IMG/VR virus record: IMGVR_UViG_3300036715_004471
Location: 62,001 to 126,000 of that record
Direction: 5' to 3' (one strand)
Length of the DNA stretch: 64,000 bases
Program-made: the position numbers and the translations under genes
Shown here: positions 28,028 through 63,400 of the stretch, piece after piece
How the letters are laid out: each line of letters starts with the position of its first letter
How positions within the stretch are numbered: the stretch's first letter is position 1
Notes under the pieces: generated by a model
What the model saw: only the letters and a program-made list of their open reading frames with translations
Databases searched by the model: none
What the model was told of the DNA's origin: nothing

Positions 28028-28101
28028 CAGGAACGGAGGGAGTCGAACCCACATCATCCAGTTACGGCTACCCGCTTAGAAGGCAGGACCGATACGTTCC
28101 C
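28028..28101 (-). tRNA. Non-canonical tRNA-Arg(TCT)-like gene lacking a D-arm
   Basis: GGGAACG/CGTTCCT acceptor, CCTGC-CTTCTAA-GCGGG anticodon arm, GTGGG-TTCGACT-CCCTC T-arm; only 7 nt in place of the D-arm and an 18-nt variable region. Confidence 0.6.
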
Positions 28102-28149
28102 AAAAAGTTTCGAAAATCTGATTTCTATTACTACCGAGACATCGTAGGT

Positions 28150-29335: not shown

Positions 29336-29775
29336 GGCGTTTTAGGTGCGACGATGGGCGCCCGCACTGACAGTGAAGTGAGAATATCCTTTGGCATCCC
29401 AATCACGCTTCGTGTACCACTTGCCATCAGGTCGCCTTTCAGCGATGGTGTCAACACCGCTCGGTGCGAAGGTGACTCCGAAGATACGATCCTCACTGAC
29501 GGAAATACGATCGTACTCCTTGGAGAGATGCTCTTGCGGATGATGACCATCGTTGTCGAATGATACGTTCATTACAGACACTCTCCCAGGTTCTTCACCA
29601 GTCGATGAAGCTCGACCATCTTCTCGGTCAAGCTGAGACCACGGAATGCTTGCAGCATGTCATCACGGCTCCGCTGGAACCGCTCGGCGATCGCCGTTTT
29701 GGTTGCTTCTTCTTTAGCAGCTCTTCGGATGGATTCGTGAAGCATTGATTTTCTCTTTGTGAGCTTATTGATGGG

Positions 29776-30237
29776 TCAGCGAACGAATCGGCGCTCCGTC
29801 GCGTAGTCGTCATCTTCGTCTTCGTCATCTTCGTCATCGTCGATTTCGACTTTGAGAGAGCCATCGATCTCTTTTTCGATCTCACGAACGACGCGCTCTT
29901 GCTCTATGCGAATTTTCTTTTCCAGCTCGATGCGAACGCTTTGGGCTTTATGACTCGACCAAGCATTATTCTCTCCGGACCTCGCAAGCCACACGAAGAG
30001 TTTACCTAGCAGTAAGTGAAAGAGCATGTAGATTGGCCACAACACAGCCGCCATGATTGGGTTTGGCGTGTCATGGTACCAACTAGGCTCTCTAGCTCGC
30101 TTGCTAGCAGCCGGGATATCTTCCCTGATATTGTGCGCACTAGCGCAGTGCGCGCACCAATACCCCCAAACCCACGCCCCGACCATGGAATATGCCAGAG
30201 CTGATGTGATGGTGATCAAGAGGTGTGTGGTGGTCAT
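29776..30237 (-). CDS. Hypothetical membrane protein with acidic tail
   Basis: Two TM-like segments; start set at MTTTH; stop directly followed by CCCATC. Confidence 0.6.
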   Translation of the reverse strand: MTTTHLLITITSALAYSMVGAWVWGYWCAHCASAHNIREDIPAASKRAREPSWYHDTPNPIMAAVLWPIYMLFHLLLGKLFVWLARSGENNAWSSHKAQSVRIELEKKIRIEQERVVREIEKEIDGSLKVEIDDDEDDEDEDDDYATERRFVR

Positions 30238-30266
30238 GTTACCATGCCATTCTTGTTGTAGTTGAA

Positions 30267-30715
30267 GATGGGTTGAACGCGGGAGAGACACGAGCGAAAC
30301 ACACGCCCTTACCAGAGCCGGGTGTCGCCTATGTTTCACCATATTGGACAGATGCCAAGTCCACAGGTGCGTGCTACGCCGTAGGATAGACCACGCATAC
30401 TACTGCTAACTTCTCTTTGCCCAAGGCGAAGAGGCGAGAGGGATGGGAATCTCTCCCGCGTTCTTCCCTGTTTGTTTCAAGGCTGGGCGCCTTATATTTC
30501 TCGTTTGCCTTAGACCTGGCAGTCAGGCGCATCACGGGGAGTGATCGAAACGATTATGCACCGTATTTCGGAAGGTGCTTATGGGCGGGATTCGGTCTCA
30601 AGGAATACGGCTTCACCGGCGACCCACCACCAGAGAATAACCACAGACCGACTGATGTTGTCAGACCGATCGAGATATAGAGATTTACTTCTTGGTCTCG
30701 CAGGAAGTCGTCGCG
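30267..30715 (-). ncRNA. Candidate large structured non-coding RNA
   Basis: No credible ORF; perfect 14-bp inverted repeat 30275-30288/30450-30463 enclosing several hairpins. Confidence 0.45.
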
Positions 30716-30821
30716 CGACTATCCAGGTATTTGGAGCCGAGATCCAGGGCTCCGCAGATCAGCACGAGACCGAGAATCAGCACGGTGAAGGGAGTGAAGT
30801 ATTCGCGCACGATCAGATCAC

Positions 30822-31811
30822 CTACAGCCGACCACTGGGAACGAGCATCAGCTCATACGTCCCGCCCTCCAAGCCCCCTTCACCCTCTTCGATGGGCTGT
30901 GGAAGAGCCTGCATCGGACCCTTGCCGGCAGTCTCCAGCTCGCCCGGATCCTTCCAGTCGCTCTCGTCGATGCAGCCAGCGAAGTAGGGAGCCGACATTC
31001 CATCACGAGTCATCCAGACGTAGAAGGTGTTGTTGAGCACCAGCGCCGGCTCGGATGCCATGATACACTCCAGAGCGAAGGCGAATGCCGCGGCACTCTC
31101 CGCCTTGGCGCCGATATGGTTCATGGCGAACTTGGTCTGCTGCTTCGCCTCGATCACCTTGTACTTGCCAATGGTGCCCGTGCGGACGCCCACGCCCTTG
31201 AACCACATGTCGACGAAAAAGCTGATGTCGACTTCGGCGTTGTGATCGACGAACGGGAAGATCACGCTTCCGTAATCGTAGACGCGTTTGCCATCCGTGA
31301 GCGACGAGACCGCCGCCAGAAGATCCAGACCCTCCAGCGAGGTATCCGCGGCGAGCGTCATGTGAACGACATCACCGTTCTGCGTACAGATGTGAGCCAC
31401 CGGATGGGGGTAGTCGGGGCTCTTGGTGAAGTAAACGTCCTCCTCCACTTCCGCCGCCTTGTACTCCTTCTCACCCTTGGTCAGGTAGGTCTCCTTGCCC
31501 TGGGTGATCCACTTGACGAGGACCTTCATCACCGACGCGGTGCCGAAGGTGTCCGGATCCTCGAACGGTTTGAGCTTGATCTCGAAGCCCTTGGCGGCGA
31601 GGAAGGCGTTGATCTTCTCGGCATCGAAGCTGGCGATGGTCTCCATCTCCTCGGAAGTGAGCTTGGAGAGCTGCTCTTTCCACTCGGAGAAGCGCTCCAG
31701 ATAGCGCTCCTGCTCGTGGTTGATGGGGTTGAACGGCGTACGAGCCGAACCGGTGACGAGACCCTGAGAAAGCGCGGCGACGAGGGGGTAAACGGCAACA
31801 GTCTTCGACAT
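30822..31811 (-). CDS. Serpin-like protein
   Basis: INAFL, LVKW, and C-terminal QQTKFAMNHIGAKAESAAA...LVLNNTFYVW...PYFAG resembling the serpin hinge, reactive loop and terminal strands. Confidence 0.6.
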   Translation of the reverse strand: MSKTVAVYPLVAALSQGLVTGSARTPFNPINHEQERYLERFSEWKEQLSKLTSEEMETIASFDAEKINAFLAAKGFEIKLKPFEDPDTFGTASVMKVLVKWITQGKETYLTKGEKEYKAAEVEEDVYFTKSPDYPHPVAHICTQNGDVVHMTLAADTSLEGLDLLAAVSSLTDGKRVYDYGSVIFPFVDHNAEVDISFFVDMWFKGVGVRTGTIGKYKVIEAKQQTKFAMNHIGAKAESAAAFAFALECIMASEPALVLNNTFYVWMTRDGMSAPYFAGCIDESDWKDPGELETAGKGPMQALPQPIEEGEGGLEGGTYELMLVPSGRL

Positions 31812-32426
31812 TTGGTGTAACTTCTTTGAATGTGGATTTGTTACCCTGCGCTCTGACGGCAAAGTTAATCCGCCAGCAGCTAGCACATCTGATGAAGATG
31901 TTCAAAGTGAAGAGCCAGCCAGGTATTTATTTCAAAACCTCTACGGGCTCAGCATCAACTACGCGACGATCCGCCACGTAATCTCCCTGGTATACTTCAA
32001 CCCGCAGACCTCTTGTTTGATGGGCTTCGTAAGCAAGCTTCATCGCCGCCCGTTTGCTCGGCTTTGTATGGATTTCATCATCCGCCGATACTATACGAAC
32101 AGTATGAGGCTTGCTATTATTCATCGGAAAAGTTTACCAGAGTGGCTTGCCGCTCCGATTGGGTCGCCGACCTCGACCATCGTTCTCACGCGGAGGGCGA
32201 GGGGGACGATTGCGCGTGATGCGCTCGAAACCGCCAGGCTCCGGATCGTCATCATCCTGAAAAGGAAGACGCTCTTCCCGCTCGGGCTGAACATCCTCGC
32301 CATTGTGATCCTGATGGGGCACACGACCCTGCATGGAGATCAATTCGCCCATAGTGTAACTCTTCTTTTCGTTCACTTTGCACCTTGCATGGTGGAGAGT
32401 GTCAACAGTGACAGCCGACGTAGTTG

Positions 32427-32720
32427 TTACAGGTCCTGCTCTTGCAGGTACTTGATCTCAGCCTTGTACTCGCGACGCCTAGCATCCATCCAGATGCAGA
32501 GCACCAGCAAGACAATCGCGGTCGCAATTCCTCCCCTGGAATCATAACCGATCGAAGTGCCCAACGTTACGGCAGCGATGCAGGCGAGGATGCCGAGAAA
32601 CCACATCAGACCCTCTTCGTACGAACGAGCGTCCGAGAGAGACTTCTTTTGAGCGTCGGTCAAACCACGCAAAACCATCTGATCGATGGGCTGCGTCGCG
32701 CGCGTTTCGTTAGCGGTCAT
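32427..32720 (-). CDS. Small membrane protein
   Basis: Two TM segments. Confidence 0.55.
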   Translation of the reverse strand: MTANETRATQPIDQMVLRGLTDAQKKSLSDARSYEEGLMWFLGILACIAAVTLGTSIGYDSRGGIATAIVLLVLCIWMDARRREYKAEIKYLQEQDL

Positions 32721-33889
32721 GGATTATCCTGTTGGGTAGAAGAAGGAAGTTGTGGGCGCCAGTGGAAGAAGATCGCATCCAGAAGATGATCAGCCACAGT
32801 GGGCACGAATTTCTTTACCACGTAAGGCGGAACAGAAAGCCTATCACCTTCCACGAACCAGCCACGCGGGAAACCCGCCGCCTCACAGGCGTCTTCGATT
32901 TCTTTGCGAGCAAGATACTGCTCCCAGGTCAGCACACCCTACTCCGTGATTTCCTCCAAGAAGAAGGAGAGCGGAATTTCCCTCTCCATGAACTCCTTGG
33001 AACTCGCCACGTAGCGATCGAGAGTATTGCCCAGCAACATCTCCCAGCTCTCCTGCGAGATCACTTTGTGAGTATCTGCCAGAGCATCGTGATGGATCTT
33101 ATCCATCCAGGACAGATGAAGCTTGAGCCAATCGAACTGTCGCGGCTTGATCGTATCTTCTTCCATGTCGGTTACCTCAGCTCGGGAGCGAGCTTTTCGA
33201 TGGGGAGCTTGGCATCGTCACATGCCGCGGCGGCACGCCCCATATCCTGAAGGGCGCTGAATACCGCATTCTGCCATACGGTACGAGGCGCCTGCTCGAT
33301 GGGTTCAGGTCCCGCCTGAATGCGCTTGTACTCGCGCACGGACTTCTCGTATGCCAGAATCAAAGGATGCTTCTCCGCAAACATCTTATTCTCCTTTGGG
33401 ATGTTAGCGACCATGACAGAAGAGACAGTCGTCCATGCCACTCTTCTTGAGACCGTCGTAAACGCATTCGCCAGTAGGCGACTCGCCACAGTCACAGGAA
33501 CCGAAGTACAGATGTGCAGGGCACGAGTCTTTCAGGGCTCCACGAACCGTGAGATCCATGGCGGTCTGCAAACTGTGCTCCAGAGCCGACAGCCTTTTCT
33601 GCGCGGCATCTCGTTCTTCCCGAACTGCCTTGATGATGGGGTTCATGATCGCCTCTACTAGAAGATGAGAATCAAAACCACCACGATGATGGGCGAGCAG
33701 AGAGCCAAGATAGCCAGGATAGCCAGGCATCCGACAGTCCCATAGATAGCTCCCTCAGTACTGCCGATGAACGGCATCGAAGAACACTTTCTTTTGAGAC
33801 CGAGATACCATTGGCTATGACGCCAATTGTTTTGAAGACTCATGCATTTTCCTTTATCGCGGGGATCCGCGATACCCGCCATAGCAAGT

Positions 33890-34483
33890 TCATGGTTTCA
33901 AGTTTTGAGTGACTCGTTTACACAAGTCTACCCAATCTTCTAACTTATGATGCGCTTTGGATTGATTACAATCACGACAACTTATGTTGATGTTATCGGA
34001 TGTGTTCTCCCCACCCAAACAAACTGGATGTATGTGATCTAAGCTTTTATGCCTAGTATCTGTAAAGGGCTGCGCACAATAGCAGCAATTCTTTGCTGCA
34101 ACATAGCGTTTAGTAACCTCTACTATTACTACCGCGCTTGCGGCATTATTCCAGTTTTTGTTGCTTCTTTTTGTGCCACCAACCAAAGCATGATGCACGA
34201 TGTTTCTCGCCACATAAGAGCAAGTATCGCATCTTCTGTGTCTGGAAGAAATCGGATTGAATTTCTCATCACATATCTCACAACTTTTTACAACTAAGAC
34301 GACTTCTTTGTCTACGTTGCGTTGAAGATAGCGCGGACCACTCTTATCCCTAAACTTCTTCCTCTTTTCGGCACAACAGAGTTTACAGTAACGATTACGA
34401 CCGTCACGTATAGCTCTGTTGATACCGAATTCGGTCGGTGATTTTTTATTCTTACACCTGATACAAGTTATGCACGTTTCCAT
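33890..34483 (-). CDS. HNH homing endonuclease
   Basis: CCYC...SLDHIHP...GG....NINISCRDCNQSK with N-terminal Zn ribbons; AT-rich. Confidence 0.85.
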   Translation of the reverse strand: METCITCIRCKNKKSPTEFGINRAIRDGRNRYCKLCCAEKRKKFRDKSGPRYLQRNVDKEVVLVVKSCEICDEKFNPISSRHRRCDTCSYVARNIVHHALVGGTKRSNKNWNNAASAVVIVEVTKRYVAAKNCCYCAQPFTDTRHKSLDHIHPVCLGGENTSDNINISCRDCNQSKAHHKLEDWVDLCKRVTQNLKP

Positions 34484-34537
34484 ACATAACTATATATCAA
34501 GTCTCACCTAAGTTTTTCGGTCAAACTTAGGTGAGAT

Positions 34538-36169
34538 TCACCTCAACGTGCCTCGCACCCTCCACAGTACATGCATGGCTCGCGTTCGAGCAACATAGGC
34601 GAGGTTACGTTCTTCACGCTGATTGCCGTTCTTGAGGAAACAGGTATCCTCCAGCACAGCCACTCGCTTCCACTCCTTGCCCTTGGCGCGATGAATCGTG
34701 CTGAGCAGCACGATGCGCTCCGGCATCTTCTTGGGATCGGGGAAGAGATCCTCGATGGCTTGAATCACCTCGTGGATCTCGAACCTGCCCTCGCAGAGCG
34801 TCGAGATACACTCGGCGGTATCGTTGACCGACTCGATGGGCTTCTTAGTTCCCTCGCGACGAGCAACCTCCGCTTCACGCCACTTCTCGGTCCACTCCAA
34901 CAGAGCATTGACGGTTTCCGCCCCGCTCCGCTTGACCATAAACTTGAGGTGCTCCGCCACGTCCCGACCCATGATGTTGGCAGGGATACCCAGCCGAATC
35001 AGAGCAAAGCAGAGCTTGAGCAACGGAGCATTGAGACGCGAAAGGATCGCGTCACCAACATCCACGGTGTCGAGAAGCTCCTCGATGGGGAGCACGATCA
35101 CTTCGCCTTCGTGAGCCCCTTCCGGGCACTCAAGTCCAGGCACGTATTCCTGCGCGGCTGCAACGATCGCCCTGCCGCAACGGTAGGTGCAAGGAAGCGG
35201 GAACCGCTGAGAATTGTAGCGCCCAACACCACGATCGATGGAGTCGGTACTAGCTCCACGCCAGATGTAGATCGCTTGGTTCTCATCACCACAGGTGATC
35301 ATCAGACCACCAGGCTTGACACTCCGATCCAACAGCTCGTGCTGAGATGGACAGAGATCCTGGTACTCGTCTACGCTCACCACGGAGTAGCGACGAATCT
35401 GAAGGTTGTGGTAGATGGGCATGGCGATCATGTCGCCGAAGTCGATTCGCTTGGTATCGTTCAGCCCGATGATGAGGATCTTCTCCGCAAGCGCGAGAAA
35501 CTCCGCGCGCGTGAGGTGACCCGTTTCCATCTCGAACTGATCGATCAGCGGCTCCATGTCCGCCGCGGTCCAGGCGAGGTAATCGCGTGCGCGATCCATC
35601 ATCTGACGAAGGTTCTCACGGGCAACCATCGTCTTGCGCTCGGTGCCCAGCTCCGCCTTGATGTAGCCGTCGTACTTCCGGTTATCGGTAGCACTCCGAG
35701 AGTTGAGCTTGGGATATGCCTTGACTACCGCTTGACGACCCAGGGCGTGAATGGTCTTAGCTTCCACACCGTCTGCCACGCGGTTCTTGAGAACCGTGGC
35801 AATGTCGAAGTTGAATGCAACCTGCACCGAATCGCGGAGAAGCTCCGCGGGCAGATAGTAATCCTTTTCCACCTCAGTGGTGGTTTTGCCACAACCAGCC
35901 AGAGCGTCGATGTGAATGCCGATGACAGGAGGCGGTTCCGGCATCGGTTGCCCGGGACGCCACGAAGCCATCTGCGCAGCATAGGTGCGGATATTCCGCA
36001 AGGCAGCCAGACCAGCAACCCGAATCGAATCGAAGATGGTGATCTGGTAGGAGGAAGGCGTGGCGAGACGCTTGCGCTCAGTGGGCGCAACCACAGGCTT
36101 GGTGTATCGCTGGTTCCCGTAGGAGCCGCCGTTACCGCGACCGTAACCACCGCTTTTGCTGTATGCCAT
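34538..36169 (-). CDS. UvrD/Rep-like superfamily 1 helicase
   Basis: ALAGCGKTT, VDEYQD, GDENQAIY.WRGA, TYRC, STIHRAKGKEW, YVARTRA; start set at MAYSK. Confidence 0.9.
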   Translation of the reverse strand: MAYSKSGGYGRGNGGSYGNQRYTKPVVAPTERKRLATPSSYQITIFDSIRVAGLAALRNIRTYAAQMASWRPGQPMPEPPPVIGIHIDALAGCGKTTTEVEKDYYLPAELLRDSVQVAFNFDIATVLKNRVADGVEAKTIHALGRQAVVKAYPKLNSRSATDNRKYDGYIKAELGTERKTMVARENLRQMMDRARDYLAWTAADMEPLIDQFEMETGHLTRAEFLALAEKILIIGLNDTKRIDFGDMIAMPIYHNLQIRRYSVVSVDEYQDLCPSQHELLDRSVKPGGLMITCGDENQAIYIWRGASTDSIDRGVGRYNSQRFPLPCTYRCGRAIVAAAQEYVPGLECPEGAHEGEVIVLPIEELLDTVDVGDAILSRLNAPLLKLCFALIRLGIPANIMGRDVAEHLKFMVKRSGAETVNALLEWTEKWREAEVARREGTKKPIESVNDTAECISTLCEGRFEIHEVIQAIEDLFPDPKKMPERIVLLSTIHRAKGKEWKRVAVLEDTCFLKNGNQREERNLAYVARTRAMHVLWRVRGTLR

Positions 36170-37215
36170 GGTTATCGCCAGCACCAATCGTTGATGGGTG
36201 CCGGTCCTCGTGTTAGGGCTTATTGGAGTAACACGCCCACTGCGTGTTATGAACACCAACATACATTTGCTTGATGGGATTTTGTCCGGTATGCGCAGTA
36301 TATAGTTCGTCAGCTTGAGACAAACTCATACTACCATCACACGAGAAGATGACTTTGCTGGTCCTATTATCGACGTAGACCCACATACAGTCTGCCTCTC
36401 CGTCGGCGACCATTTCTCATGGATCGCAATTGCTTTTTCAGCAGCTTGACCTGCTCTCGAACCTCGTCGAGTTTTTGGTCGTCAGTCTTGTGATGCAAGA
36501 TCCACTTCTTGAAGAAGGGGAAAAGGATCAGACCAATGACCACATCGAAAAGAAACATCAAGAACAGCTCAAATTGCCAGTGCGATGCGCTGCGCAAGAG
36601 CGTCCAAAAAGTCTCTGGTTCCACGATTCAACCCGTGATGGGTAGAGTATGGATCTCGCGAATCTCGTCGATCTCTTGATCCGTCGCATTCAACAACAGA
36701 CGAGCCGCGGCGAGCATTGCCCGCAAAGATCCCGTGGCAAGAATCTTCTTGTTTTCATCCCATGATTGGAAGAGATGGGGGCGCATACGTCTGGATGATG
36801 AAGCGCCCCGGCACTTTCGGATCACGAACGATGTTGCTTTGACCATCGTCGCGAATGATCCACCCGTGATTGTTCTGTGCCATGGTCTCCACTTTCTGTC
36901 CAGTATAGCCGCGCTTGCCGGCGTTGTACTTCACGTCCCATTGGCAGCCGGGGCATCCAGGCAAGCCAGACTCATCGTTCCACGATGAATGCCAGTAAGA
37001 TTCACAGATGGGTCGCGAGTTATCGACGCTCATTACTTATCTTCAAGCGAAAATTTTGCAACAAGAACTATGAGGATTGTTCTTCGCTCCCGGTGGTACC
37101 TACCCAGAAACAAAATACTTTCTCACGTTTCGCTAAACGTTTCGTATAGGTTCAACCAAACGTACCGTTAGGAACATTCAATTGAGCTAACCACTATCTG
37201 GCGCTTGTCGCAAGG

Positions 37216-37288
37216 TGCCCAGGGTGGGACTCGAACCCACACTTAACGGATTTTGAGTCCGTCGCGCTTGCCGTTTCGCCACATGGGC
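37216..37288 (-). tRNA. tRNA-Leu(CAA), short variable loop
   Basis: GCCCATG/CCTGGGC acceptor (one mismatch), ACGGA-CTCAAAA-TCCGT, GTGGG-TTCGAGT-CCCAC, discriminator A. Confidence 0.85.
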
Positions 37289-37363
37289 ATAGGGATTGCC
37301 TATCTCTAGCGCAACCCTATTCTTGCATCAACTTCAGCAAAACTGATCCTGTTTCCAGAATCA

Positions 37364-37444
37364 TGGTGCCAGTGATGGGATTCGATACCCACACCCTTTT
37401 CGGTACGGGAGCGACCCGCAACATATGCTTTATGCTACACTGGC
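37364..37444 (-). pseudogene. Degenerate tRNA or tRNA-like RNA with encoded CCA
   Basis: Perfect GCCAGTG/CACTGGC-ACCA acceptor and T-stem, but aberrant anticodon loop and 8-nt T-loop. Confidence 0.6.
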
Positions 37445-37610
37445 TAAATTGACATAACCAGAGCCATAGAATGGTTAATGTCGCGGATTATCTTAGAAGA
37501 TGCAATGATCTAGGATTGCTTCTCTTCACGAGATGGGTCAGGAAACACCGACCATCCTCTTGGTAATCTCTTGCGAGATTGTCCCTAGCAGCAAGCTGCT
37601 AAACCAACAG

Positions 37611-37683
37611 TGAACCCAGGGCGAGTCGAACGCCCAACTAACTGGTTAAAAGCCAGCTACTCTGCCGATTGAGTTATGGGTTC
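37611..37683 (-). tRNA. tRNA-Lys(TTT)
   Basis: GAACCCA/TGGGTTC, ACTC/GAGT D-stem, GCTGG-CTTTTAA-CCAGT, GGGCG-TTCGACT-CGCCC. Confidence 0.92.
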
Positions 37684-38130: not shown

Positions 38131-38438
38131 ACCCTGATATCAGAGTATTCCTAGATCCGTATTAAAAGGTGGCGATGGGATTCATAGCTCTCGCCAAGGT
38201 GGTTTCACCATCCACCACGGAGAGGTTGAGAAATGATCAGGTTGCGATGATTACACACGCCCCGCGGACAAACGAGATACATCCCGCAAGCTTCGATTGC
38301 ATCACGATCACTGTCGGTTCTATGAGGAACCAGATCAATGTTGCAGAACTCCAGCTCGTAACCGCACTTCTTGCAAACAGTTTTTCTGGTCTCAACCGGC
38401 TTTTCGCTTATCACCCTGATGGTCATGATCTCTGGCTC

Positions 38439-54980: not shown

Positions 54981-55084
54981 TGGCGCGGATCATGCTATAT
55001 GCAAGCCCCATGCCTTGCCAAGTACGCGCCCTGTAAACTTTGGGGCTTTTGGCACGTATATGGCTATATGCACGCGCCATGCCA
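54981..55084. promoter_or_regulatory. Two head-to-head double sigma54-type elements
   Basis: 54981-55015 TGGCGCG-N4-ATGCT-ATA-TGCAA-N4-CATGCCT; 55050-55084 TGGCACG-N4-TGGCT-ATA-TGCAC-N4-CATGCCA. Confidence 0.7.
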
Positions 55085-56604
55085 ACCAAAACAGAAAAGC
55101 CAAACGACTCTGCCCCAGCATCCCTCGCGGGACACCAGGGACAAAAATCAGTAATCGTAGTAGGATTCTTCTAGCTCATCCTGAGCCTCGATGGGATCGC
55201 GGAAGAGGGATCCATCAGGTCATAGAGACACTCGTCGAAAGGATCCAGCGGGGGAAGATCGTCGATGGTGAAGAGAGCTTCCAGCGCCGCTTGCTCTTCC
55301 TCGATCTCTTGAAGCCCCTCGTTGATGGGGTTGAAGAAGTAGGGATCATCCTTCTTGGACGACCACCGAGTCCCAGGATCGCGATGTCGTCCCGAGTTGA
55401 GATCACGGCTGCGTTGATGATGGGTTCGTCCCCACTTCATGTAAGCCTCCTCAGATTGAATCTGATTCAACGACCAATCGACTTGGTGGATGGGTTTAGG
55501 TCTTGTCGGCGCGCTCTTCGGCGGCAGCCATCTCGAACACCTGATCCATGATGTCAGCGCCGATGGGATCCTCACGACGGATCCGAGCTTCCTCTTCCTC
55601 CGCGATGGCGAAGCCAAGCTTGATGAGATCGGGCGGCGCCTTCTTGTGAGGATGGGAAGGTCGCTCCGGCACCTTGCAAGCGCCGACGCTCTTGACGCCC
55701 TTCGACCGAAGCATGTCACCGATGGTTACCATATCTTGACCTCGATGGGTTCAGCGCACCGTCACCTTGCACTTGGCGCAGGTGTTGAAGCAGTTGTAGT
55801 TGACGACCTCCCGCAACGAAACCTTCTTGCGAGCCTTCTCGGATGGGTCGAGGCAGGCGACATGCTTGACCGTCACCGTGCCCTTGACGAAACACAGCGG
55901 GTTTGCATCCAGTTTCTCTTGAAGACGTTGCTGCCAGACGGGCTTTGCCATGACAACCTCCAGAACCACAGAGTGATGGGTCATACCTTGGGAAACAACC
56001 ACGAGTAGACGCCGCCCGATTGCGCGCGAATACCGCACATGACCTCGTAACGCAATCGGAAGTTGCCCAGGATACCCCTTGGACACCAGTCGCTCTCCAC
56101 CATCTCGATGGGTGGAACCCACGTCGTCGGGTCAGCCTCGGTGTAGTGAGGCTCCACCAGCCGGAACAGATGGGTGATCAGCTCGGCGCAATCGCAGGCA
56201 TCGCGCCGCTGGATCGCCCGCTTGTTCTCCGCGGTCGCCGTGGCGATCCGAATCTCGTGCATGAGGCGAAGGGCTTGGATGATCAGCCGCTCCGCTTCGC
56301 GCACCTTCTCCAGAATCTCGGGGTTCGTCATGTCGATCCTCCGATCCCCTGAGGGATGGGTCAGTCGGGCTTGCCGTCATTATCCGCCCAGAACGCCGGA
56401 GCGGATTGGTAGGACCAAGGCTGGTCGTCGCCGTAGCCAAGCGGCGTCTGCATGAGACGAAAGGCAACGCGATCGGAGATGGGGAGGAATACCCGCCGAG
56501 CCAGTCCAGCCCCCGCATGTGAACCTCGTCACCTTCGTAGATGGTGCCGGGGGAATTGCAGTCGATGAACTTCATGGCTCAGCCTACCTCCCTTAGAAGA
56601 TGGG

Positions 56605-56829
56605 TTACTCCGAGAGCACCACCGCGACATTGCTGCCGTGGACCTTCTCTTGAACCAGCACCTCGGGAGCGATGGGGTGCTGGTCGTGAACGAAGCTGAC
56701 CCCGTACAGGTAAAGGTCTCGCGCATCGCGCAAGCCGATCCCGATCGTTTCACGGATCACCTTGATGCACGGGTACTTCTCGCGCGGTAGGGTGAGACAG
56801 AACTGGACCCAGGCTTCTTGAGGAGTCAT
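56605..56829 (-). CDS. Small protein with ribosomal L7/L12 C-terminal-like motif
   Basis: KYPCIKVIRETIGIGLRDARDL resembles KI.VIK.VRE.TGLGLKEAKDL. Confidence 0.5.
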   Translation of the reverse strand: MTPQEAWVQFCLTLPREKYPCIKVIRETIGIGLRDARDLYLYGVSFVHDQHPIAPEVLVQEKVHGSNVAVVLSE

Positions 56830-57558
56830 GCCTTCTTCTCGACGTTCTCGACGATGGGGAGGTCGCAGGTGAAGTTGGGAACCTTGGCGAGCCCGCACGC
56901 CTCGTGCAGTCCGTCGCGGAAGCCTAGCGCCTGATTCCAGTCCTCGCGCCAGTTGAACGAGGCGTCGCCGTAGTCCGACCACGCCTTGTTCCGACGCTCG
57001 ATCTCGATGGGGTCGGTCGTGACCTCCGTCTCGAACTCGGGACGAACCGGACGCTTGTCCGTGAGATGGACGACGCGGCGCTCCGCCGCCAACCACGCCA
57101 ACCACAAAGCCCGCTGAACTTCCGTCATGTCGCTCGTGTTGCTCATGGACTCGCCCTCGTGCAGAGGTGGATGGGTTACTTGGGTCCGTATCGGAGGAGC
57201 AGCCAGCCCGCCACGGCGGCGAGCAGAATCCCCACGATGCCCGACGAACACAGCAGCCCGATCGAGACGCCGCCCATCAGGTAGAGAACGGCGAGCACGA
57301 ATTGGTTGATCTTCTGACGCCGACGAAGCTCTTGAAAGGTCATGGTCGTGACCCTCAGTTGCTCTGCGGCTGGTCGAACTTGATGGGCGGGAAGCCGTGG
57401 TTGGTCCGCATGTTGAAGGCGACGCCCGCGCGGAAGATGTCGCGCGGGGTGACCGGAACCACGTTGCCGGCGGAAGTGATCATGCAGAGCTTGCCGTTGA
57501 CGATCTTGGTGTGAAACTTGAGCATCATGTCACTACCCTCCGCTTCTTGGAAGATGGG

Positions 57559-58020
57559 TTAGCTGAACGAGACGACCCGATAGCCGCGCCGATCGCAGAT
57601 GACGGACCAGCCGAAGTTGCAGAGCGCCACCGCGATGGGCTGGTAGCACACCGATCCACCGTTGGTGGACATCGGCTTGCCGCATGCCTCCTCCCAATCC
57701 TGATGGGTTCGCTGTGCAGCTTCGATCATGGATCGCACCGCAGAGAGCGCTTCGGACTCGCTCCGCCGCGTATCGCCGTAACCGGAGCCAGAGACGGGCG
57801 TGGTGTCCTCGTGAACGCCCTTGCCGCGGAGCCCGAGATCCACCGCAGCGCACTCGCTGCCGAAGAGCGATGGGGAATACGTCTTCCCGTCGTAGGTATT
57901 GGTCCAGGGAGCCTTGACGATCTCCTCACCGATGGGCTTGCGGCAGTCGAAGACGCGCAGCCAGGAAGGAATCTCTTGCCCGAGGAAAGAACCCGTGATC
58001 TCGATGGCGAGCTTGTTCAT
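57559..58020 (-). CDS. Hypothetical protein
   Basis: GGAG RBS before MNKLA; the longer ORF call overlaps tRNA-Asn. Confidence 0.6.
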   Translation of the reverse strand: MNKLAIEITGSFLGQEIPSWLRVFDCRKPIGEEIVKAPWTNTYDGKTYSPSLFGSECAAVDLGLRGKGVHEDTTPVSGSGYGDTRRSESEALSAVRSMIEAAQRTHQDWEEACGKPMSTNGGSVCYQPIAVALCNFGWSVICDRRGYRVVSFS

Positions 58021-58049
58021 GGTCTTGCTCCAGAACTTTATAGGATGGG

Positions 58050-58124
58050 CGTCCAGAGGAGGAATCGAACCTCCGACATTCCGCTTAACAGGCGGACGCT
58101 CTAACCGAACTGAGCTATCTGGAC
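58050..58124 (-). tRNA. tRNA-Asn(GTT)
   Basis: GTCCAGA/TCTGGAC, GCTC/GAGC D-stem, TCCGC-CTGTTAA-GCGGA, GGAGG-TTCGATT-CCTCC, discriminator G. Confidence 0.93.
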
Positions 58125-59519
58125 AGATGGGAAACACAGGGACGTTCGCGACTTCCGAGTGACATCGCCTTGGCGATGGGTACGGCGAGGTCTTACGTCC
58201 CCATGCTTCAAGTTTTCAGCCGGCAGTTCCAGCCATGCCGTTGATGCTGCTCCCTCCGCCTCCGCCGTGCGATGGGCACGCCTGCCACCGATCGTGCGGA
58301 TTGCTGTTGAGGGTACGGAATCTCCGAGGAGGCAAGCGCTCCACCATGGTCAAGCCCCGCGCCTTGAGTCCGGCGATGAGGACCGATGGGCGCTCAGCGG
58401 AGTAACCCAGCTCCTCACTCCACTCTTGAGCCTGCGCGAAGGTGAAGGAGGTTTGATCGTTGTCGCGGATCTCTTTTGCGAGTCTATCCAACAAGGCTTC
58501 GTTCATGACCTTACCCTCTTGGTTGAGAAGATGGGATTAGGCGAACTTGATCCCCGCGCTGTAGCTAGGGACGCTCCGCCCAGGTGAAGATGGCGTTGAG
58601 ATCGCTGATGGACACATCCAGGGGCTTGCCCGCAGGATGGGTCAGGCGAAGGTCGGGCAGCCCGTCGGGCGCCTCGATCACGACGGTGTTGACGAAGCTA
58701 CCGCCAGGCAGCTCGCAACAGGGGAGCTTGGCTCCGATGGGCTTGCGGATCATCATGTCGCTACCGTGTTCTGCCAGACCTCGCCGTGAGGATGGGAGAA
58801 GAGGCGCTGGCAGTAAAGCGCCTGGTCTTGGAGCTTCAACACCTCGCGAGCGTCGAAGATGGGCAGCACGGTCCCGTTGTGGAACGCCTGGATCACGAGC
58901 CAGGCGCGCTCCTGGATGGGTAGCTTGTTCCACGCCTCCACGCAGGAGAGCGCGCCTGCGATGAGGAAATTGTTGAGGAAACGTTCCATGGCTCTACTTC
59001 CTTTCCTCGGGGTCTCCGCAGAACAGGCAGAAGTCGTGGATGGGGTCTTCGTTCTCGTCGTAGACGCAGAAGCCAGTCGGACTGGTCGAACAATCCCAGG
59101 TTCCGTGCTCCAGCCAGGATGGGCTGTCGGACTTGACCGCTCGAACCAGCATGTCCTCAGAAAGATGGGTTGGGGAGCCGGCTAACGGCTCCGAGGCAGC
59201 ACGCGGTGCTCTTTCTTCCACAACGCCAGCCGTTCGGCAAGCGGGGTCAGATGCAGCGCGTCGCCAGGAAGGATGGGCATCCCCGTCGCCGTCAGCTTTG
59301 GATTGCTTGCCCACTGTCGGCGCTCCGCGCCAGACGCACGCAACCACAGCCCGTGCCGATGATTCAGTCCACGCACCACAGATGGGTTACCCAGGCGAAG
59401 ATGCCAATCATCGGGGAAACCGACGAACTGACGTTGATTCCAGATTGCCGGGTAGGTGCTCACACCTTCACCGCCTTATTGAGAATGATGGGTCGGGCGC
59501 CCGCTTGGGCGTGTGGACT

Positions 59520-59625
59520 TGGCTTATCTTTTGCAATATGCAAAGCCCGTTCCAACCATAATCAGAAAAGCGGGCAACACTATCCGACCTTGGCATTAGT
59601 TTTGTAATAGGCAAAGCCCGTGCCA
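59520..59625. promoter_or_regulatory. Two head-to-head double sigma54-type elements
   Basis: 59520-59554 TGGCTTA-N4-TTGCA-ATA-TGCAA-N4-CGTTCCA; 59591-59625 TGGCATT-N4-TTGTA-ATA-GGCAA-N4-CGTGCCA. Confidence 0.7.
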
Positions 59626-59649
59626 GACAAAAGGGGAAAGCAGAAACGA

Positions 59650-59685
59650 CCCCGCCCTGGTGCCCGTGAGGGCACCAGGGCGGGG
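59650..59685 (-). terminator. Intrinsic terminator
   Basis: Perfect 16-bp stem CCCCGCCCTGGTGCCC/GGGCACCAGGGCGGGG just after the 59688 stop, T-rich sequence downstream on -. Confidence 0.75.
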
Positions 59686-59817
59686 CATCACTTTGGATTC
59701 GTCGGCTTGGGAGGCGGACGCTTGACCTTGGGCGGACACTTGCCCGCGTACCAGCGCTTGCCGTCGAAGGTGTGCGGATGGTACTGCTGGCACTTGTCAC
59801 ACAGCTTGTACATGGGG

Positions 59818-60141
59818 CTACTGCGCAGCCGCGTGGAGATCCTCCAGCGTTTCGATGGCGCGGATGTGCTCGCTCGCAGCCTCATGAACCTGCTGCCGAC
59901 TGATGTGGTTGTCGTGCTCGGCGCCGAGAACGTCTTGATGTGCGTCCCAGGCGATGGCGCACTCCGTCACCGCGCGATCGGCGCCTTCCTCGGCGACCAC
60001 CTTGAGGGCGTGTTCGCGAGCCTCGTTGGCGGCGAACTTGCTCTGCCGCACCTTGGCGCGCACCTCCGTGCGCTTTTCACGGCACTTGCCAACCGCCACC
60101 AGGGTGAGAAATGCGTTTGCCTTTGCTTCCAGAATGCTCAT
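59818..60141 (-). CDS. Hypothetical coiled-coil protein
   Basis: GGAG RBS, co-oriented. Confidence 0.6.
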   Translation of the reverse strand: MSILEAKANAFLTLVAVGKCREKRTEVRAKVRQSKFAANEAREHALKVVAEEGADRAVTECAIAWDAHQDVLGAEHDNHISRQQVHEAASEHIRAIETLEDLHAAAQ

Positions 60142-60569
60142 GGTTCATCTCCGAATTGGTGTTCGATGGGTCAGGTGAAGGGGAAGACCATCTTGCCCGC
60201 GACGTAGCGCGCGCAGGAGTGCTCGCCCCACTTGCCCTCAGGATGGGCGGTGCGCATCACCACCGCTTCGGGATCGGCGAAGGGGAAGTCGGGGTCCGAC
60301 CCGTTTCGGGCGAGCTGATGCGCCTCCGTGTGCGAGAACGCGGCACAGGGCGGAAAGTCGTCGATGGGTTGCGTGCAGCCGCCCGCGGGCAGGAACACGA
60401 CGAAGTATCGGGAAGCCAGAATGATCTCGACCATGGGATCCTCCGCAAGAAGCAGTCTGATGGGTTCGTCGCATGGGAGAGGGGAAGAACGTGGGCTTTG
60501 GGACACACTTACACCCGCCAGCGCAAGTGTGCCGCCCTTCCCCTCTCCGATGGGATAAACCCCGGAGGG

Positions 60570-60598
60570 GCGAGGAGAGGGGGAACCCCTCTCCTCGC
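60570..60598 (-). terminator. Hairpin after the 60607 gene
   Basis: 13-bp stem GCGAGGAGAGGGG/CCCCTCTCCTCGC. Confidence 0.55.
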
Positions 60599-60606
60599 GG
60601 GAGACA

Positions 60607-61953
60607 TCACGCGCGGGGCGCGGTGTTGAGAATGCCGTGGCTGTCGGAAGCGGTGTCCCGCTCGATCGCGGCGGCGCTGACGATGGTGCCCACGGGCAGG
60701 TAGGCGTGCGAGCGGCTCGCGGTGTCATAGATGCGGAGCGCTTCCTCGAAACACGCGGTCGCGCCGCGGGAGTGAAGGGCGGCGCTGACGCGCTCCACCG
60801 TATCGGGATCCGAGGGACCGCTCGACTCCAGGGAATCGAGATCCGCGCCAATCTGGTCGAGCCGCTCGTAAGCGAGCGCCTCCAGGCGAGCGAGGGCGGC
60901 GTCGAGATCCTCCGCGCAGCCGGCGCGGAACTTAAAGCCGTCCACCTTGTCCTGCACGTCCGTGATGGGGTGCAGGTACGGGAGCAGGGGGGCGACCACC
61001 GGGGAGGGAACCTCGATCACGCGGTAGCCCGCGTTTTCCAGGACCGCCTCACGAACCAGGCGGCGGTTCACCTTGACCTTGGCGCCGGACTCGTCCGTGA
61101 TGGGGCGAGCGACCACCTTCGTGTGCTGCTCGATTCCCCGAGTGTAGGGGAAGTTGCCGAGGAGCTTGGCGGAGAACTCGACGTGCTCCCCCGCGAGGAC
61201 GTGGGCGCGAAGGTCCGCGAAGAGATCCAGCTCCTCCGCCGCGATGACTTCCCGCTGGCAGAGATCCAGCCCGAGGGCGCGGATGGGGTTGGGCATCCCC
61301 TTGACGAAGCCCGTGGTCCCCTCCTGCCGCGCAGCGTAGGCGTCGGCGGAGCGGTGGGCGCGGATGGGAGCGGGGAACCCCTCGTCGCGACGCGCCTCGA
61401 TGTTCAGCTTGGCGTGCGCGTCCCGACGCGCGGCGTCGAGCTGCGCGCCGTGGGGCTCGCCGGAGGCGTAGCCGCAGAAGGCGATGAGGCTGGCGCGCTC
61501 GTCCTTCTTCTGCTCGGAGGAGTCCCACACCATGATGGGCTCGCCCTTCTGGTTGAGGCGGAGGGAGCCCGCCGCGTGGACCTCACCCGTGATGGGATCG
61601 GTGGTGTCGATCTCGTAGCGGGCGGGGCGCTTGCCGGCGACGCGGAGCGCGGTCAGGATGCCCGCGGCGTCGAGCCCGCCGGTGCAGGGGATGTTGACGT
61701 TGACGGCGCGGGGCGCCGCCTTCTCCGCCTTGTCGGCGGACTTCGCCTTGCGACCCTTGCGACCCTTGCGCTCGGCGGGCGTGATCAGGGTCGAGCCCTG
61801 AACGTTCGCCGTCACCGTGGTGCTCGTGGCACCGATGGGGTTGGGGGTCTTGGCGTACGACGCCATCAGCAGGGCGGTCGCCGCGGGGTCGCTGGCGAGG
61901 AGGAGGGCGAGAGAAGCGGTGGCGGCGTTGGGACGGGAGGCACGGAGAGTCAT
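60607..61953 (-). CDS. Large hypothetical (probable early) protein
   Basis: 448 aa, very high GC3, first gene downstream of the largest sigma54-type cluster; no family recognised. Confidence 0.75.
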   Translation of the reverse strand: MTLRASRPNAATASLALLLASDPAATALLMASYAKTPNPIGATSTTVTANVQGSTLITPAERKGRKGRKAKSADKAEKAAPRAVNVNIPCTGGLDAAGILTALRVAGKRPARYEIDTTDPITGEVHAAGSLRLNQKGEPIMVWDSSEQKKDERASLIAFCGYASGEPHGAQLDAARRDAHAKLNIEARRDEGFPAPIRAHRSADAYAARQEGTTGFVKGMPNPIRALGLDLCQREVIAAEELDLFADLRAHVLAGEHVEFSAKLLGNFPYTRGIEQHTKVVARPITDESGAKVKVNRRLVREAVLENAGYRVIEVPSPVVAPLLPYLHPITDVQDKVDGFKFRAGCAEDLDAALARLEALAYERLDQIGADLDSLESSGPSDPDTVERVSAALHSRGATACFEEALRIYDTASRSHAYLPVGTIVSAAAIERDTASDSHGILNTAPRA

Positions 61954-62241
61954 GGCGGTGACCTTTCGTTAGAGAGACTTGACCCGTTTGGGACCAACCC
62001 CAACGGGGATGGGTCGCTCTCCGTTAGGGCGCGGTAGCTATCTGCTACCGCCTCGCGGTGTCTTGCGACCCGCTTGACTACGCCAGCCGGGAAGGCTGGA
62101 TGGGAAGCGCACCATTGCGCTTCGCCCGGCTAGCTCATCAGGGAGCGTCGCCGGTATCTCACCACAATTAGTGCGATTGATGGGCTCCCCCTATTCTGAT
62201 TGATGTGCTCAATCTCCCCTAGCTCGGGGCTCGGCAGCCCT

Positions 62242-62464
62242 CGGCATCGATCTTGCATCTTGCAATCTTCGTGCCAGTCGTATCAGTCCATTCAATATAT
62301 TGGTCCGACCTTTGCATATTGCAATCTCTAGACCATATCGTCAATTCTGTGAAAACAGAATTGGTCTTGGCATATTCAATGCAATATGCAAAGAGAGTGC
62401 CAAGGTAAAAAGGAAACGCGAAAGGGGAGCCCGAAGGCTCCCCGCGACTGGCACGGATCTTGCT
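62242..62464. promoter_or_regulatory. Three double sigma54-type elements plus one single site
   Basis: Dyads at 62242-62276, 62301-62335 and 62368-62402 (the - half of the first is a perfect TGGCACG-AAGA-TTGCA); single + site TGGCACG-GATC-TTGCT at 62449-62464. Confidence 0.75.
62424..62443 (-). terminator. Intrinsic terminator with UUCG tetraloop
   Basis: GGGGAGCC-TTCG-GGCTCCCC on -, followed by TTTCGCGTTTCCTTTTT. Confidence 0.75.
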
Positions 62465-63122
62465 AGAGAGAAGCAATCGCTAGCATGGCAACAAGCTCCG
62501 CGCGATCATCAGGATCCCAACCGGGGAGATCCAGATCCCAGAACCATGCCGGGGCGAGATCGCACAGATTCGACGTTACCTCGTCGAAAGCCGCATCGTC
62601 ATCGGTCGACGTGGCATGGTAAGTGTAGAGCGCGGCGAGGATATGTTCGACGGTGGTGCACATACTCCACACGCAAAGCGCAGGAAGATGGGCATTGGAT
62701 GGGTTTTACAGTCAGAACGGAAGCGCCCGTTCTCCCCCTCGACGGGGAATATTGGGGCGCTTCCTAGTTGTCGCCGCCCCTCAGTTGATGGGGTCGATCC
62801 CGTCGAAGTTGACTTCCTTCTCGCGCTCCGCGAGGGTCAGCCGCTCGCGCTTGGCACGCCGCTTGTCCTTGCCGCGGATCTCGCCCGTGAGCTTGGCATC
62901 GGCGCGCATGTCGCGCGTCTGCGACTTGATCAGGGAATCCAGCTCCGAACCCGACGAACGCTTCTTCATGATGATCCCTCGAATCCTTCGAAAGATTGGT
63001 TGCTTAGAAACGCCTGGGACGGAAAAACCCGTCTTCCAAGCGGGTTGTCCAGGCATCGAACCGAAGCCAGTAATCGAGCAGCTTATCCAGCATACCCGAC
63101 GCCTGGCTCTGGTCTGGATGGG

Positions 63123-63400
63123 TCACAGCATCCCCGCCGCCGAGGCGACGACGAGCACCACGGTCCCGACGATCCACACGATGAGACCCTTCCACTGTCC
63201 GATCCAGATCGACACCACAGCCAGTGCCGTCCCGGCAATGGTGATGGGTACCTCCTGCGGGGCGAGCGACATGCGCCTGGCGCCGAGCAGCACCATGAGC
63301 GCGACCAGCGCCACCGTGCCGAAGAACCACACCGCGATACCCTTGCCCTTGCCGATGAAAAGGGCGACCAGATTGAGAGCGAGAACGAGGAGAGCCATGA
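63123..63400 (-). CDS. Small membrane protein
   Basis: Almost entirely hydrophobic from MALLV; stop directly followed by CCCATC. Confidence 0.55.

Follow-up and report, generated by a model that had tools for sequence, protein, structure and literature searches.

Short repeated words with a strict orientation are known from several phage and bacterial systems. T4 late promoters (TATAAATA) belong to a class of promoters that is defined by a short −10-type core without a −35 element; they are co-oriented with the genes, restricted to one temporal gene class and placed at a short fixed distance before the gene. In mycobacteriophages, the start-associated sequences of Cluster K and the stoperators of Cluster A (L5) are asymmetric 13-bp sites with 10-36 copies, which are strictly intergenic, lie close to stop and start codons and have one orientation relative to transcription. 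Stoperators share the consensus of the repressor operator and bind a known repressor of a temperate phage, whereas start-associated sequences have a fixed position just upstream of start codons and include the ribosome-binding site. T4-type phages carry PeSL cassettes, long units of a sigma-70 promoter plus hairpin, between the small early ORFs of hyperplastic regions. On chromosomes, Chi and KOPS/SRS are over-represented and strongly skewed words whose density rises toward a defined point, and in T7, a phage whose genes are all co-oriented, all EcoP15I sites lie in a single orientation.

Here, we analyzed a 64,000-nt stretch (positions 62,001 to 126,000) of the IMG/VR record IMGVR_UViG_3300036715_004471, which will be referred to as the window, in the context of the 446.5-kb genome of this uncultivated jumbo phage (G000) and of its relatives. 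An initial annotation made from the sequence alone had noticed that the hexamer CCCATC follows the stop codons of about 25 or more genes within 0-2 nt, and proposed an RNA-level role at cistron boundaries (cleavage into monocistronic units, coupling of termination and re-initiation, or stoperator-like roadblocks), with the alternative that this is simply the only free space upstream of the next ribosome-binding site.

Results

To validate the association with stop codons, all sites named in the initial annotation were examined. All 13 sites with CCCATC directly after the stop and all 10 sites with 1-2 intervening nt are present on the minus (coding) strand, and all three stop codons occur. Gene calls made independently by the JGI pipeline on identical contigs yielded 86 genes with a downstream neighbour, 23 of which carry the hexamer 0-2 nt after the stop (0 nt in 13, 1 nt in 8 and 2 nt in 2), whereas offsets of 3-12 nt hold about one each. 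The null model proposed beforehand, placing the motif uniformly in the spacer with 14 nt reserved for the ribosome-binding site, expects 10.8 ± 2.0 with a maximum of 19 in 5000 simulations. An ORF-based count that needs no gene caller gave 25 of 180 copies at offsets 0-2 in the dense zone against about 3.4 for random positions, and the same spike was seen in the relatives G001 (11 at offset 0 against 0.6) and G002 (17 at offsets 0-2 against 1.2). The observation is thus confirmed, and the association goes beyond free space. However, these 23-25 sites represent only about 10% of the 245 copies in the window.

Representative sites illustrate the arrangement on the minus strand. In a typical 29-nt spacer (43210-43238), the stop (43239-43241) is followed by CCCATC (43233-43238), 23 nt containing GAGGAG, and an ATG (43207-43209); six spacers are exactly 29 nt long. 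The hexamer at 53385-53390 directly follows the TGA of the gene ending at 53391 with an ATG 23 nt further on, that at 53740-53745 follows the TAG of the gene ending at 53746 in a 13-nt spacer in which the motif abuts GGAG, and that at 57553-57558 follows the TAA of the gene ending at 57559 (30-nt spacer). At 63117-63122, directly after the TGA of the gene ending at 63123, an ATG lies 23 nt downstream although no gene is called there. The leftmost of the named copies is at 29770-29775 (gene ending at 29776, 30-nt spacer).

Analysis of the complete window (1-64000) clearly demonstrated that the post-stop sites are part of a one-directional array. In total 248 copies were found against 43.7 ± 6.4 in shuffled sequences, 245 on the minus and 3 on the plus strand, and the split in the whole genome is 352:4. 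Density rises from about 1-4 per 2 kb on the left to 11-19 per 2 kb on the right. The untranslated leader of the first gene of the GC-rich block (63920-64000, minus strand; ATG at 63917-63919) carries copies at 63943-63948 and 63971-63976, and the abrupt onset of the array with two more copies lies about 20-120 bp beyond the right end of the window, where GC steps from 0.41 to 0.60. The onset element is conserved in G001, and the orientation is the same on both sides of the onset. From there the density, about 1 per 110 bp, decays along the direction of transcription, and it is zero in the 165-kb structural and replication block. The dense zone (38000-64000, minus strand) has a GC content of 54-68% and is filled with small early-type ORFs, its coding nature being shown by 3-base periodicity. 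Copies are evenly spaced here with a mode of 80-140 bp, spacings under 60 bp are depleted (16 against 58 expected), and the fraction of spacings below 0.3 times the mean is 0.03 against 0.26 expected (0.02-0.04 in three genomes), as expected for signals whose readers occlude each other.

The inverse word GATGGG is purged genome-wide (4 against about 75 expected), whereas all 18 one-mismatch neighbours, including the G-U wobble partner GGTGGG, are at normal levels. The forward word is enriched in the early zone (186 against 10 expected from base composition at genome 100-130 kb) but absent from the late regions of G000 (0 against 8.6) and G001 (0 against 5.5) and reduced in those of G002 (8 against 15.6); the inverse word in late regions amounts to 1 against 25.5, 0 against 20.9 and 16 against 45.6. 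The three inverse copies in the window are at 48099-48104, just upstream of a T-run and a 33-bp palindrome, 51510-51515 and 57273-57278.

This polarity might be explained by escape from a host Type III or Type ISP restriction enzyme that cuts only between inversely oriented sites; keeping every site in one orientation would make the phage immune, as with EcoP15I sites in T7. Depletion of the inverse word is restriction-site-like, specific to the exact hexamer and ranks alongside that of avoided palindromes (CTGCAG, 1 against 46; GAGCTC; CTCGAG). Nevertheless, avoidance does not predict a 10-25-fold enrichment of the forward word, its gradient, even spacing and purge from late genes, or the cassette described below, and three of the four persisting inverse copies lie inside the densest zone. 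We consider this explanation very unlikely. A Chi-like signal is also very unlikely, in which the G-rich strand 5′-GATGGG-3′ would face a RecBCD/AddAB-type nuclease entering at the first-injected end and switch it from degradation to repair, frequent recombination then raising GC by biased gene conversion. If the onset end enters first and the host has such a nuclease, the orientation is right and the skew and the gradient with its maximum at that end fit; even spacing minimises the longest unprotected stretch, and hexamer density and GC3 rise together within and between genomes. However, Chi in the inverse orientation is neutral and its distribution is irrespective of gene class, whereas here the inverse word is purged 20-fold and forward copies are purged from late genes; the start-linked cassette with its extended consensus in G002 and G003 also has no place in such a model.

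Of the 352 copies, 216 (about 60%) lie inside predicted ORFs, in all three reading frames, and further copies lie in leaders. The UvrD-type helicase gene (34538-36262, minus strand) is an example of a conserved gene with internal copies (34835, 35084, 35414 and 36193). Pro-Ile is 3-fold over-represented in the first 26 kb, where 49 of the 55 dipeptides are encoded CCC-ATC, while Asp-Gly is encoded GAT-GGG once against about 28 expected. Only 14 of 67 positions are shared with G001 orthologues, many of the differences being synonymous; positions turn over between orthologues while density is kept. These data indicate that the signal acts on nucleic acid and not on protein. Furthermore, copies keep the polarity of the genome inside opposite-strand genes: 3 are antisense within the trypsin-like peptidase gene, 2 (27886-27891 and 28467-28472) within the HNH/homing-endonuclease gene on the plus strand (27385-28824; PHROG HNH), and the ratio across conserved opposite-strand ORFs of three genomes is 12:0.

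We also considered that the array has no function and is a by-product of a local mutational or gene-conversion drive or of foreign GC-rich DNA, since the hexamer co-varies with a strong compositional anomaly, the first 30 kb has few orthologues in relatives and IMG/VR labels the record 'provirus' (the gene content looks lytic). However, orthologous genes differ almost only at third codon positions (dGC3 +0.3, dGC1/2 +0.03), so the block is native, and a drive neither purges the inverse word or the late genes, nor spaces copies evenly, nor builds a start-linked cassette in AT-richer relatives. This possibility appears the least likely.

The hexamer is tied to the next start codon at least as much as to the stop. 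An ATG lies 23-24 nt after the motif in 34 copies against a background of about 12, a peak also present in G001, and start distances of 22-25 nt occur 16 times against 4.2 expected, although this holds for only about 10% of copies in this genome. The hexamer lies upstream of a separate GGAGG-type site, and no flanking consensus or −35 element accompanies it in this genome. In G002, by contrast, it heads a roughly 30-nt cassette (CCCATC-N3-TAACGG-N15-ATG) placed once before each early gene, with the upstream stop either before or after the hexamer. Here 78 of 88 copies read CCCATC-NNW-TAACGG, and 47 of the 111 copies in the whole G002 genome have an ATG 24-25 nt on, with about one copy per gene. 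G003 has CCCATC-ATGAAACA.

Some copies follow hairpin-plus-T-run terminators, so that a new transcript would have to start there. In addition, 33-bp palindromes of the form TGGCAY-N5-TTGCA-N3-TGCAA-N5-RTGCC, whose halves resemble sigma-54 promoters, lie 8-29 nt upstream of a copy, like activator or operator sites. In the window such elements were found on the minus strand at 62369-62401, at 62243-62275 (followed 58 nt later by a CCCATC) and at 48035-48067, after a T-run and 27 nt upstream of the CCCATC at 48002-48007. Sigma-70-like sites are not enriched (60 against 57.6). Searching for a cognate factor, one Sigma70_r2 ORF was detected at genome 161.4 kb, in the late block, but no T7-type polymerase, no sigma-54 and no enhancer-binding protein; a protein with a DxDGD motif is dockerin-like and not a polymerase.

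Discussion

Our preferred but tentative explanation, which we hold with less than even confidence, is that CCCATC is a short, orientation-dependent signal read on duplex DNA that marks 'start or load here, in this direction, early'. In its simplest form it would be the core (a −10-like element) of an early-class promoter used by host RNA polymerase, as presumed from the sigma-70-family protein and the lack of a T7-type polymerase, together with an unidentified phage or host specificity factor. In this view the ancestral layout is still seen in G002: CCCATC, about 7 AT-rich bases, a C|GG start-like site, a 16-nt leader with a Shine-Dalgarno-like element, and ATG. Because spacers are minimal (about 29 nt), the upstream stop would abut the hexamer, giving the pattern first noticed. 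In this genome and in G001 the bare hexamer would have proliferated into coding sequence, most densely at the entry end of the co-oriented gene array and thinning out through the middle genes, with copies removed by selection where they would fire at the wrong time (late genes) or in the wrong direction (the inverse word anywhere). The selection seen on the forward and inverse words in early and late regions fits a directional start signal in all four combinations. The distribution, polarity, purges, cassette, distance to start codons and selection at synonymous sites are directly demonstrated by the sequences, whereas transcription initiation itself, RNA polymerase as the reader and a start about 8 nt downstream of the hexamer are inferred from sequence alone. 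A 6-bp promoter is unusually short, hundreds of sense promoters inside ORFs seem wasteful, and the GC-rich context is not what DNA melting would favour. Moreover, the stop-hugging preference persists in spacers too short for a promoter plus leader (6-19 nt) and in 16 sites without a called start 22-25 nt on, so the pattern is not explained completely.

The RNA-level interpretation of the initial annotation is only partly supported. CCCAUC in early polycistronic RNA might be a site for an endoribonuclease or RNA-binding protein (RegB-like early-mRNA turnover, processing to defined 5′ ends, or coupling of termination to re-initiation). This would be consistent with the post-stop spike, with one cassette per cistron in G002 at a fixed distance from the AUG, with the few promoter-like palindromes there (7 for about 80-100 early genes), so that most cassettes lie inside operons, with absence from late messages as for a tag of early-mRNA fate, and with a release factor encoded by the phage next to the array. 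However, cleavage at the intragenic copies would destroy the messages, an RNA-only reader would not see the inverse word, which is purged even in late genes while the wobble partner is not, copies in opposite-strand genes are antisense to those messages, and no nuclease was identified. A purely RNA-level role therefore appears unlikely.

Equally unlikely is a loading or guide site for a directional DNA-tracking machine other than RNA polymerase, either a motor that helps draw the 446-kb genome into the cell from its leading end or a KOPS/SRS-type guide for a translocase or helicase; forward sites would load the motor inward and inverse sites would drive it the wrong way. Strict polarity independent of the local gene strand, the exact purge of the inverse word, the highest density at one sharply defined end with decay over more than 100 kb, even spacing, and genes all co-oriented away from that end, as in T7, where entry is motor-driven, argue for it, if that end is indeed the physical one. 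It explains neither the fixed 23-25 nt distance to start codons, nor the one-per-gene cassette with a start-like C|GG in G002, nor the purge of forward copies from late genes, and no candidate motor was identified, the UvrD helicase in the window being ordinary. More generally, and with less than even probability, a bare hexamer may act as a self-sufficient, direction-specific loading signal for a DNA-tracking machine on a huge phage genome, whether as an unusually minimal promoter class or as a genome-entry or translocase guide. In some lineages it would be in runaway expansion, from about 12 copies to about 90, then 246, then 352, rewriting protein sequences (the Pro-Ile excess) and travelling with a genome-long GC3 and stop-codon gradient that would encode the infection timetable in DNA position.

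Compared with promoters such as those of T4 late genes, the hexamer is likewise a short asymmetric word co-oriented with the genes, restricted to one temporal class and placed a short fixed distance before the gene. Its copies are purged elsewhere and in antisense, as for a short-core, class-specific promoter, but it is only 6 bp, C-rich and set in GC-rich DNA, with hundreds of copies including those inside ORFs, a density gradient and an exact purge of the inverse word. With stoperators it shares the single orientation and, in short intergenic spaces, the position close to stop and start codons, but not the site length, the intergenic restriction or a known repressor, and its orientation does not flip in opposite-strand genes. 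The G002 cassette resembles a start-associated sequence, and the position relative to start codons is comparable, but the hexamer does not include the ribosome-binding site. Like PeSLs, the cassettes are repeated between small early ORFs, but the shared core is a bare hexamer. In contrast to KOPS/SRS, the orientation does not switch at the onset, and in contrast to both these and Chi, the inverse word is purged, the forward word is purged from late genes and the hexamer is linked to start codons. Finally, the single orientation resembles that of EcoP15I sites in T7, but here it is combined with massive enrichment, a gradient and a cassette context, which restriction avoidance does not predict.

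Genomic context of the hexamer

The window covers bases 62,001-126,000 of a single 446,541-bp contig (referred to as G000), which represents an uncultivated jumbo myovirus from microbial-mat metagenomes. The contig encodes terminase, portal, protease, tail sheath, baseplate, tape measure, a family-B-type DNA polymerase, SbcC and ribonucleotide reductase, and within the window two phiEco32-type COOH-NH2 ligases, an RNA ligase, a UvrD helicase and HNH nucleases. Almost every gene lies on the minus strand. No close relative was found among deposited GenBank phages, whereas IMG/VR holds the relatives G001 (432.8 kb, terminase 83% identical), G002 (447.8 kb, 79%) and G003 (353.8 kb, 68%). Five further partial relatives showed no clear polarity of the hexamer, but these are 29-47% complete fragments around the late genes. 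Among the DNA sequencing runs, compared as assembled contigs only, the sequence was identical in X2 and X3, and X4 holds a strain about 95% alike, a comparison without power to resolve conservation of the hexamer. A 465,767-bp JGI contig holds the same genome but is about 19 kb longer, so that a terminal repeat or a longer version is possible.

CCCATC follows stop codons more often than free space predicts

The initial annotation had reported CCCATC 0-2 nt after the stop codon of many genes, and this observation was confirmed, as every site it listed is present. Using JGI gene calls on identical contigs, the motif starts 0, 1 or 2 nt after the stop in 13, 8 and 2 of 86 genes, respectively, whereas later offsets hold about one each. 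Under the null model that the annotation itself had proposed, with the motif placed uniformly in the spacer and the RBS excluded, 10.8 +/- 2.0 sites are expected and 23 were found. The spike recurs in G001 and G002. The alternative that the motif merely occupies the only free space is therefore not sufficient.

The post-stop sites are part of a one-directional array

The post-stop sites represent only about a tenth of all copies. CCCATC occurs 245 times on the minus strand of the window and 3 times on the plus strand, and in the whole genome the split is 352 to 4. Reading along the coding strand, the array starts abruptly about 100 bp beyond the right end of the window, where within 1 kb GC steps from 0.41 to 0.60 and the count from 4 to 9 copies per kb. 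Density reaches 81 copies per 10 kb, decays over about 100 kb to about 3 per 10 kb, and is zero on both strands through the 165 kb that hold the structural and core replication genes. In the dense zone the copies are evenly spaced, with a mode of 80-140 bp and 16 spacings under 60 bp where 58 are expected. No flanking consensus was detected. A tRNA or tandem-repeat origin of the ~110-bp spacing was rejected, since only 3 tRNAs lie in the window (37214-37288, 37610-37683 and 58046-58125) and the flanks are not conserved.

Directly before the first hexamer lies an AT-rich non-coding region of about 300 bp (within 5900-6480 of L005, a stretch of this genome; genome 125.9-126.5 kb, just right of the window), with blocks conserved in G001 and G002, for example AATGCNATAAGATGCTT and a half-palindrome GGCAAGAGTCGTGCC. 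It is a candidate first early promoter, origin or DNA end, and a search for known RNA families at the onset gave no Rfam match. A secreted-looking trypsin-like peptidase gene lies on the opposite strand right at the onset (L005:6444-7175 (+), genome 126,444-127,175). Just upstream of the onset, a run of five paralogous small ORFs (88-110 aa) with an N-terminal CxxC motif was found on the JGI contig L138 (L138:5067-6788, genome about 127.2-128.9 kb).

The signal resides in the nucleic acid and is under selection

Genome-wide, where genes were called with a crude caller of our own, copies lie in frame 0 (112), frame 1 (66), frame 2 (38) and between genes (136). A protein-level motif was rejected, as the hexamer occurs in all three frames and in leaders. 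In the first 26 kb, Pro-Ile dipeptides are three times commoner than amino-acid frequencies predict (55 against 18), and 49 of them are spelled CCC-ATC, against 19 expected from codon usage. Only 14 of 67 copies in orthologous genes sit at the same place in G001, and many of the differences are synonymous (CCC-ATC against CCA-ATT), indicating that density rather than position is maintained.

The reverse-complement word on the coding strand is among the most depleted hexamers (GATGGG 4 against 75 expected), ranking with classical avoided palindromes such as CTGCAG (1 against 46). Restriction-site avoidance was also seen for GAGCTC (12 against 52), CTCGAG (9 against 33) and GTGCAC (13 against 29), and GGTACC is avoided in G001. 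The depletion of GATGGG is exact, as all one-mismatch neighbours are at normal levels. These include the G-U wobble partner GGTGGG, by which RNA-RNA pairing was rejected as the cause of the purge. Asp-Gly is spelled GAT-GGG once where about 28 are expected. In late regions both orientations are purged in three genomes. A functionless drive fails on these purges and on the even spacing and is considered very unlikely.

Related genomes suggest the origin of the array

G001 repeats the architecture, with a split of 246:4, an abrupt onset and GC rising from 0.28 to 0.5, whereas G002 has a weaker version (111:25, with GC rising to 0.42) and G003 has about a dozen copies just after an equivalent GC step. 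In G002, 78 of 88 dense-zone copies read T-CCCATC-NNW-TAACGG, and across all 111 G002 copies an ATG follows 24-25 nt after the hexamer in 47. G002 carries about one copy per small early gene, with 50 gene units holding exactly one copy against 33 under a Poisson expectation, and the upstream stop codon lies either 0-2 nt before the hexamer or in the TAA of TAACGG. G003 has CCCATC-ATGAAACA. In G000 the extension is gone, but an ATG still peaks 23-24 nt after the hexamer (34 copies against about 12 background), and six spacers are exactly 29 nt. The stop-hugging pattern is therefore largely the footprint of a compact pre-gene cassette in minimal spacers. Nevertheless, a residual preference for the position next to the stop remains, as 16 of the 23 sites have no called start 22-25 nt on.

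A proposed reader of duplex DNA rather than of RNA

Three results point to a reader that sees duplex DNA and acts directionally. First, the inverse word is purged everywhere with exact specificity. Second, the forward word is purged from late genes. Third, copies keep the polarity of the genome inside opposite-strand genes, with 3 copies antisense to the trypsin-like peptidase gene at the onset, 2 in an HNH gene, and 12:0 in conserved opposite-strand ORFs of three genomes. An RNA-only cleavage or re-initiation site would not constrain the antisense word and would be destructive at one site per 110 nt inside ORFs. The RNA-level role at cistron boundaries inferred in the initial annotation is only partly supported. 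RNA processing fits the cassette but not the antisense purge, and we regard it as unlikely.

The forward word is wanted early and unwanted late, and the inverse word is unwanted both early and late. This four-way pattern is what a short start signal for a directional machine predicts, and the simplest such machine is RNA polymerase, with the hexamer as a -10-like core. In G002 and G003 the hexamer is followed by about 7 AT-rich bases and a pyrimidine-purine step (C|GG, C|A), which would leave a 16-nt leader carrying the Shine-Dalgarno-like element. Some copies follow terminator hairpins, and the avoidance of close pairs fits mutual occlusion of the machines that would read the signal. The identity of the reader and the start position are inferred from sequence alone, and we propose this reading only tentatively. 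A non-polymerase translocase or entry motor fits the polarity and the gradient but neither the link to start codons nor the late purge, and appears unlikely. Chi sites and escape from Type III restriction each fail on two tested features and are considered quite improbable, the latter slightly more so.

In all four genomes, 33-bp palindromes (TGGCAY-N5-TTGCA-N3-TGCAA-N5-RTGCC) lie 8-29 nt upstream of a copy, often following terminators. They are found in the window at 62369-62401, 62243-62275 and 48035-48067 (minus strand), 10-14 copies are present in G001 and G003, and a degenerate copy lies at the onset itself. Each half matches the sigma-54 -24/-12 layout, but no phage-encoded sigma-54 or enhancer-binding protein was found. 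By eye, the outer arms do not covary, so that a symmetric DNA site fits better than an RNA hairpin.

The phage has a sigma-70-family gene, whereas no T7-type polymerase was found. The only sigma-70 region-2 match (genome 161,463-161,582, minus strand, within a 207-aa ORF) lies in the late block next to ribonucleotide reductase. A search for a late-promoter word gave only a weak GATATAT enrichment upstream of late genes, which may be the promoter of this sigma-70-family protein. Sigma-70-type promoters are not enriched in the G002 early zone (60 against 57.6). A 1331-aa protein with a DxDGD motif (L007:15859-19854 on another stretch of this genome, minus strand; genome 175,859-179,854), which lies among the structural genes and is conserved at 65-90% identity across hundreds of huge-phage contigs, was considered as a virion RNA polymerase. 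This was rejected, since its DIDGD loop is annotated as dockerin-like in relatives and there was no other support.

Companion gradients in composition, tRNAs and stop codons

GC3 falls steadily with distance from the onset from 0.73 to 0.21, the window being the steep part. The GC rise is native, as orthologues in relatives differ by +0.3 in GC3 but only by +0.03 at positions 1 and 2, and its amplitude differs between related phages and tracks hexamer density. A foreign or host origin of the GC-rich block was rejected on this basis, and also because the most GC-rich ORF has only phage-contig relatives. This 448-aa ORFan (window 60607-61953, minus strand) has a GC3 above 0.9 and carries seven hexamer copies. 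It gave no Pfam or PHROG hit, and its only homologues are three clusters on phage-like metagenome contigs. IMG/VR classes both G000 and G001 as 'provirus', probably because the GC-rich early block looks like host DNA, although synteny and the GC3-only divergence of orthologues show that the block is part of the phage. As a practical warning, the GC-rich early block probably makes virus-prediction pipelines label these phages in this way.

G000 has 56 tRNA genes (39 in G001, 37 in G002), mostly clustered in the middle region, and many have U34 anticodons that read A-ending codons. It might be inferred that early genes use host-like codons before the phage tRNAs accumulate. TAG ends 19 of 82 genes in the first 40 kb but none of about 250 late genes. 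Two CTA-anticodon suppressor tRNA genes are present, at coding-strand positions 125,658 and 431,239 of the reverse-complemented contig, as well as a PCRF/RF-1 release-factor gene just upstream of the array (L138:1712-2797). Nevertheless, long late ORFs are intact under the standard code, and no recoding is claimed.

Implications and comparison with known systems

If the hexamer is an early start or loading signal, it provides a purely sequence-based readout of the temporal programme and entry polarity of an uncultivated clade of 350-450-kb phages, in which the early, middle and late blocks can be read from hexamer density, GC3 and TAG usage. It would further show how short a regulatory word can be while still being policed by selection across half a megabase, being enriched, evenly spaced, purged in the wrong orientation and purged from the wrong gene class. 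In this view, the related genomes catch a regulatory cassette being stripped down to its core and spreading into coding sequence, at a measurable cost to proteins.

A literature search found no description of this hexamer or of such gradients, and there is a substantial chance that the array is something less familiar than a variation on the systems described so far. The nearest known systems are short-core class-specific promoters, start-associated sequences and stoperators, PeSL cassettes, Chi/KOPS and the EcoP15I site bias of T7, each of which shares one or two features with the array and fails others.
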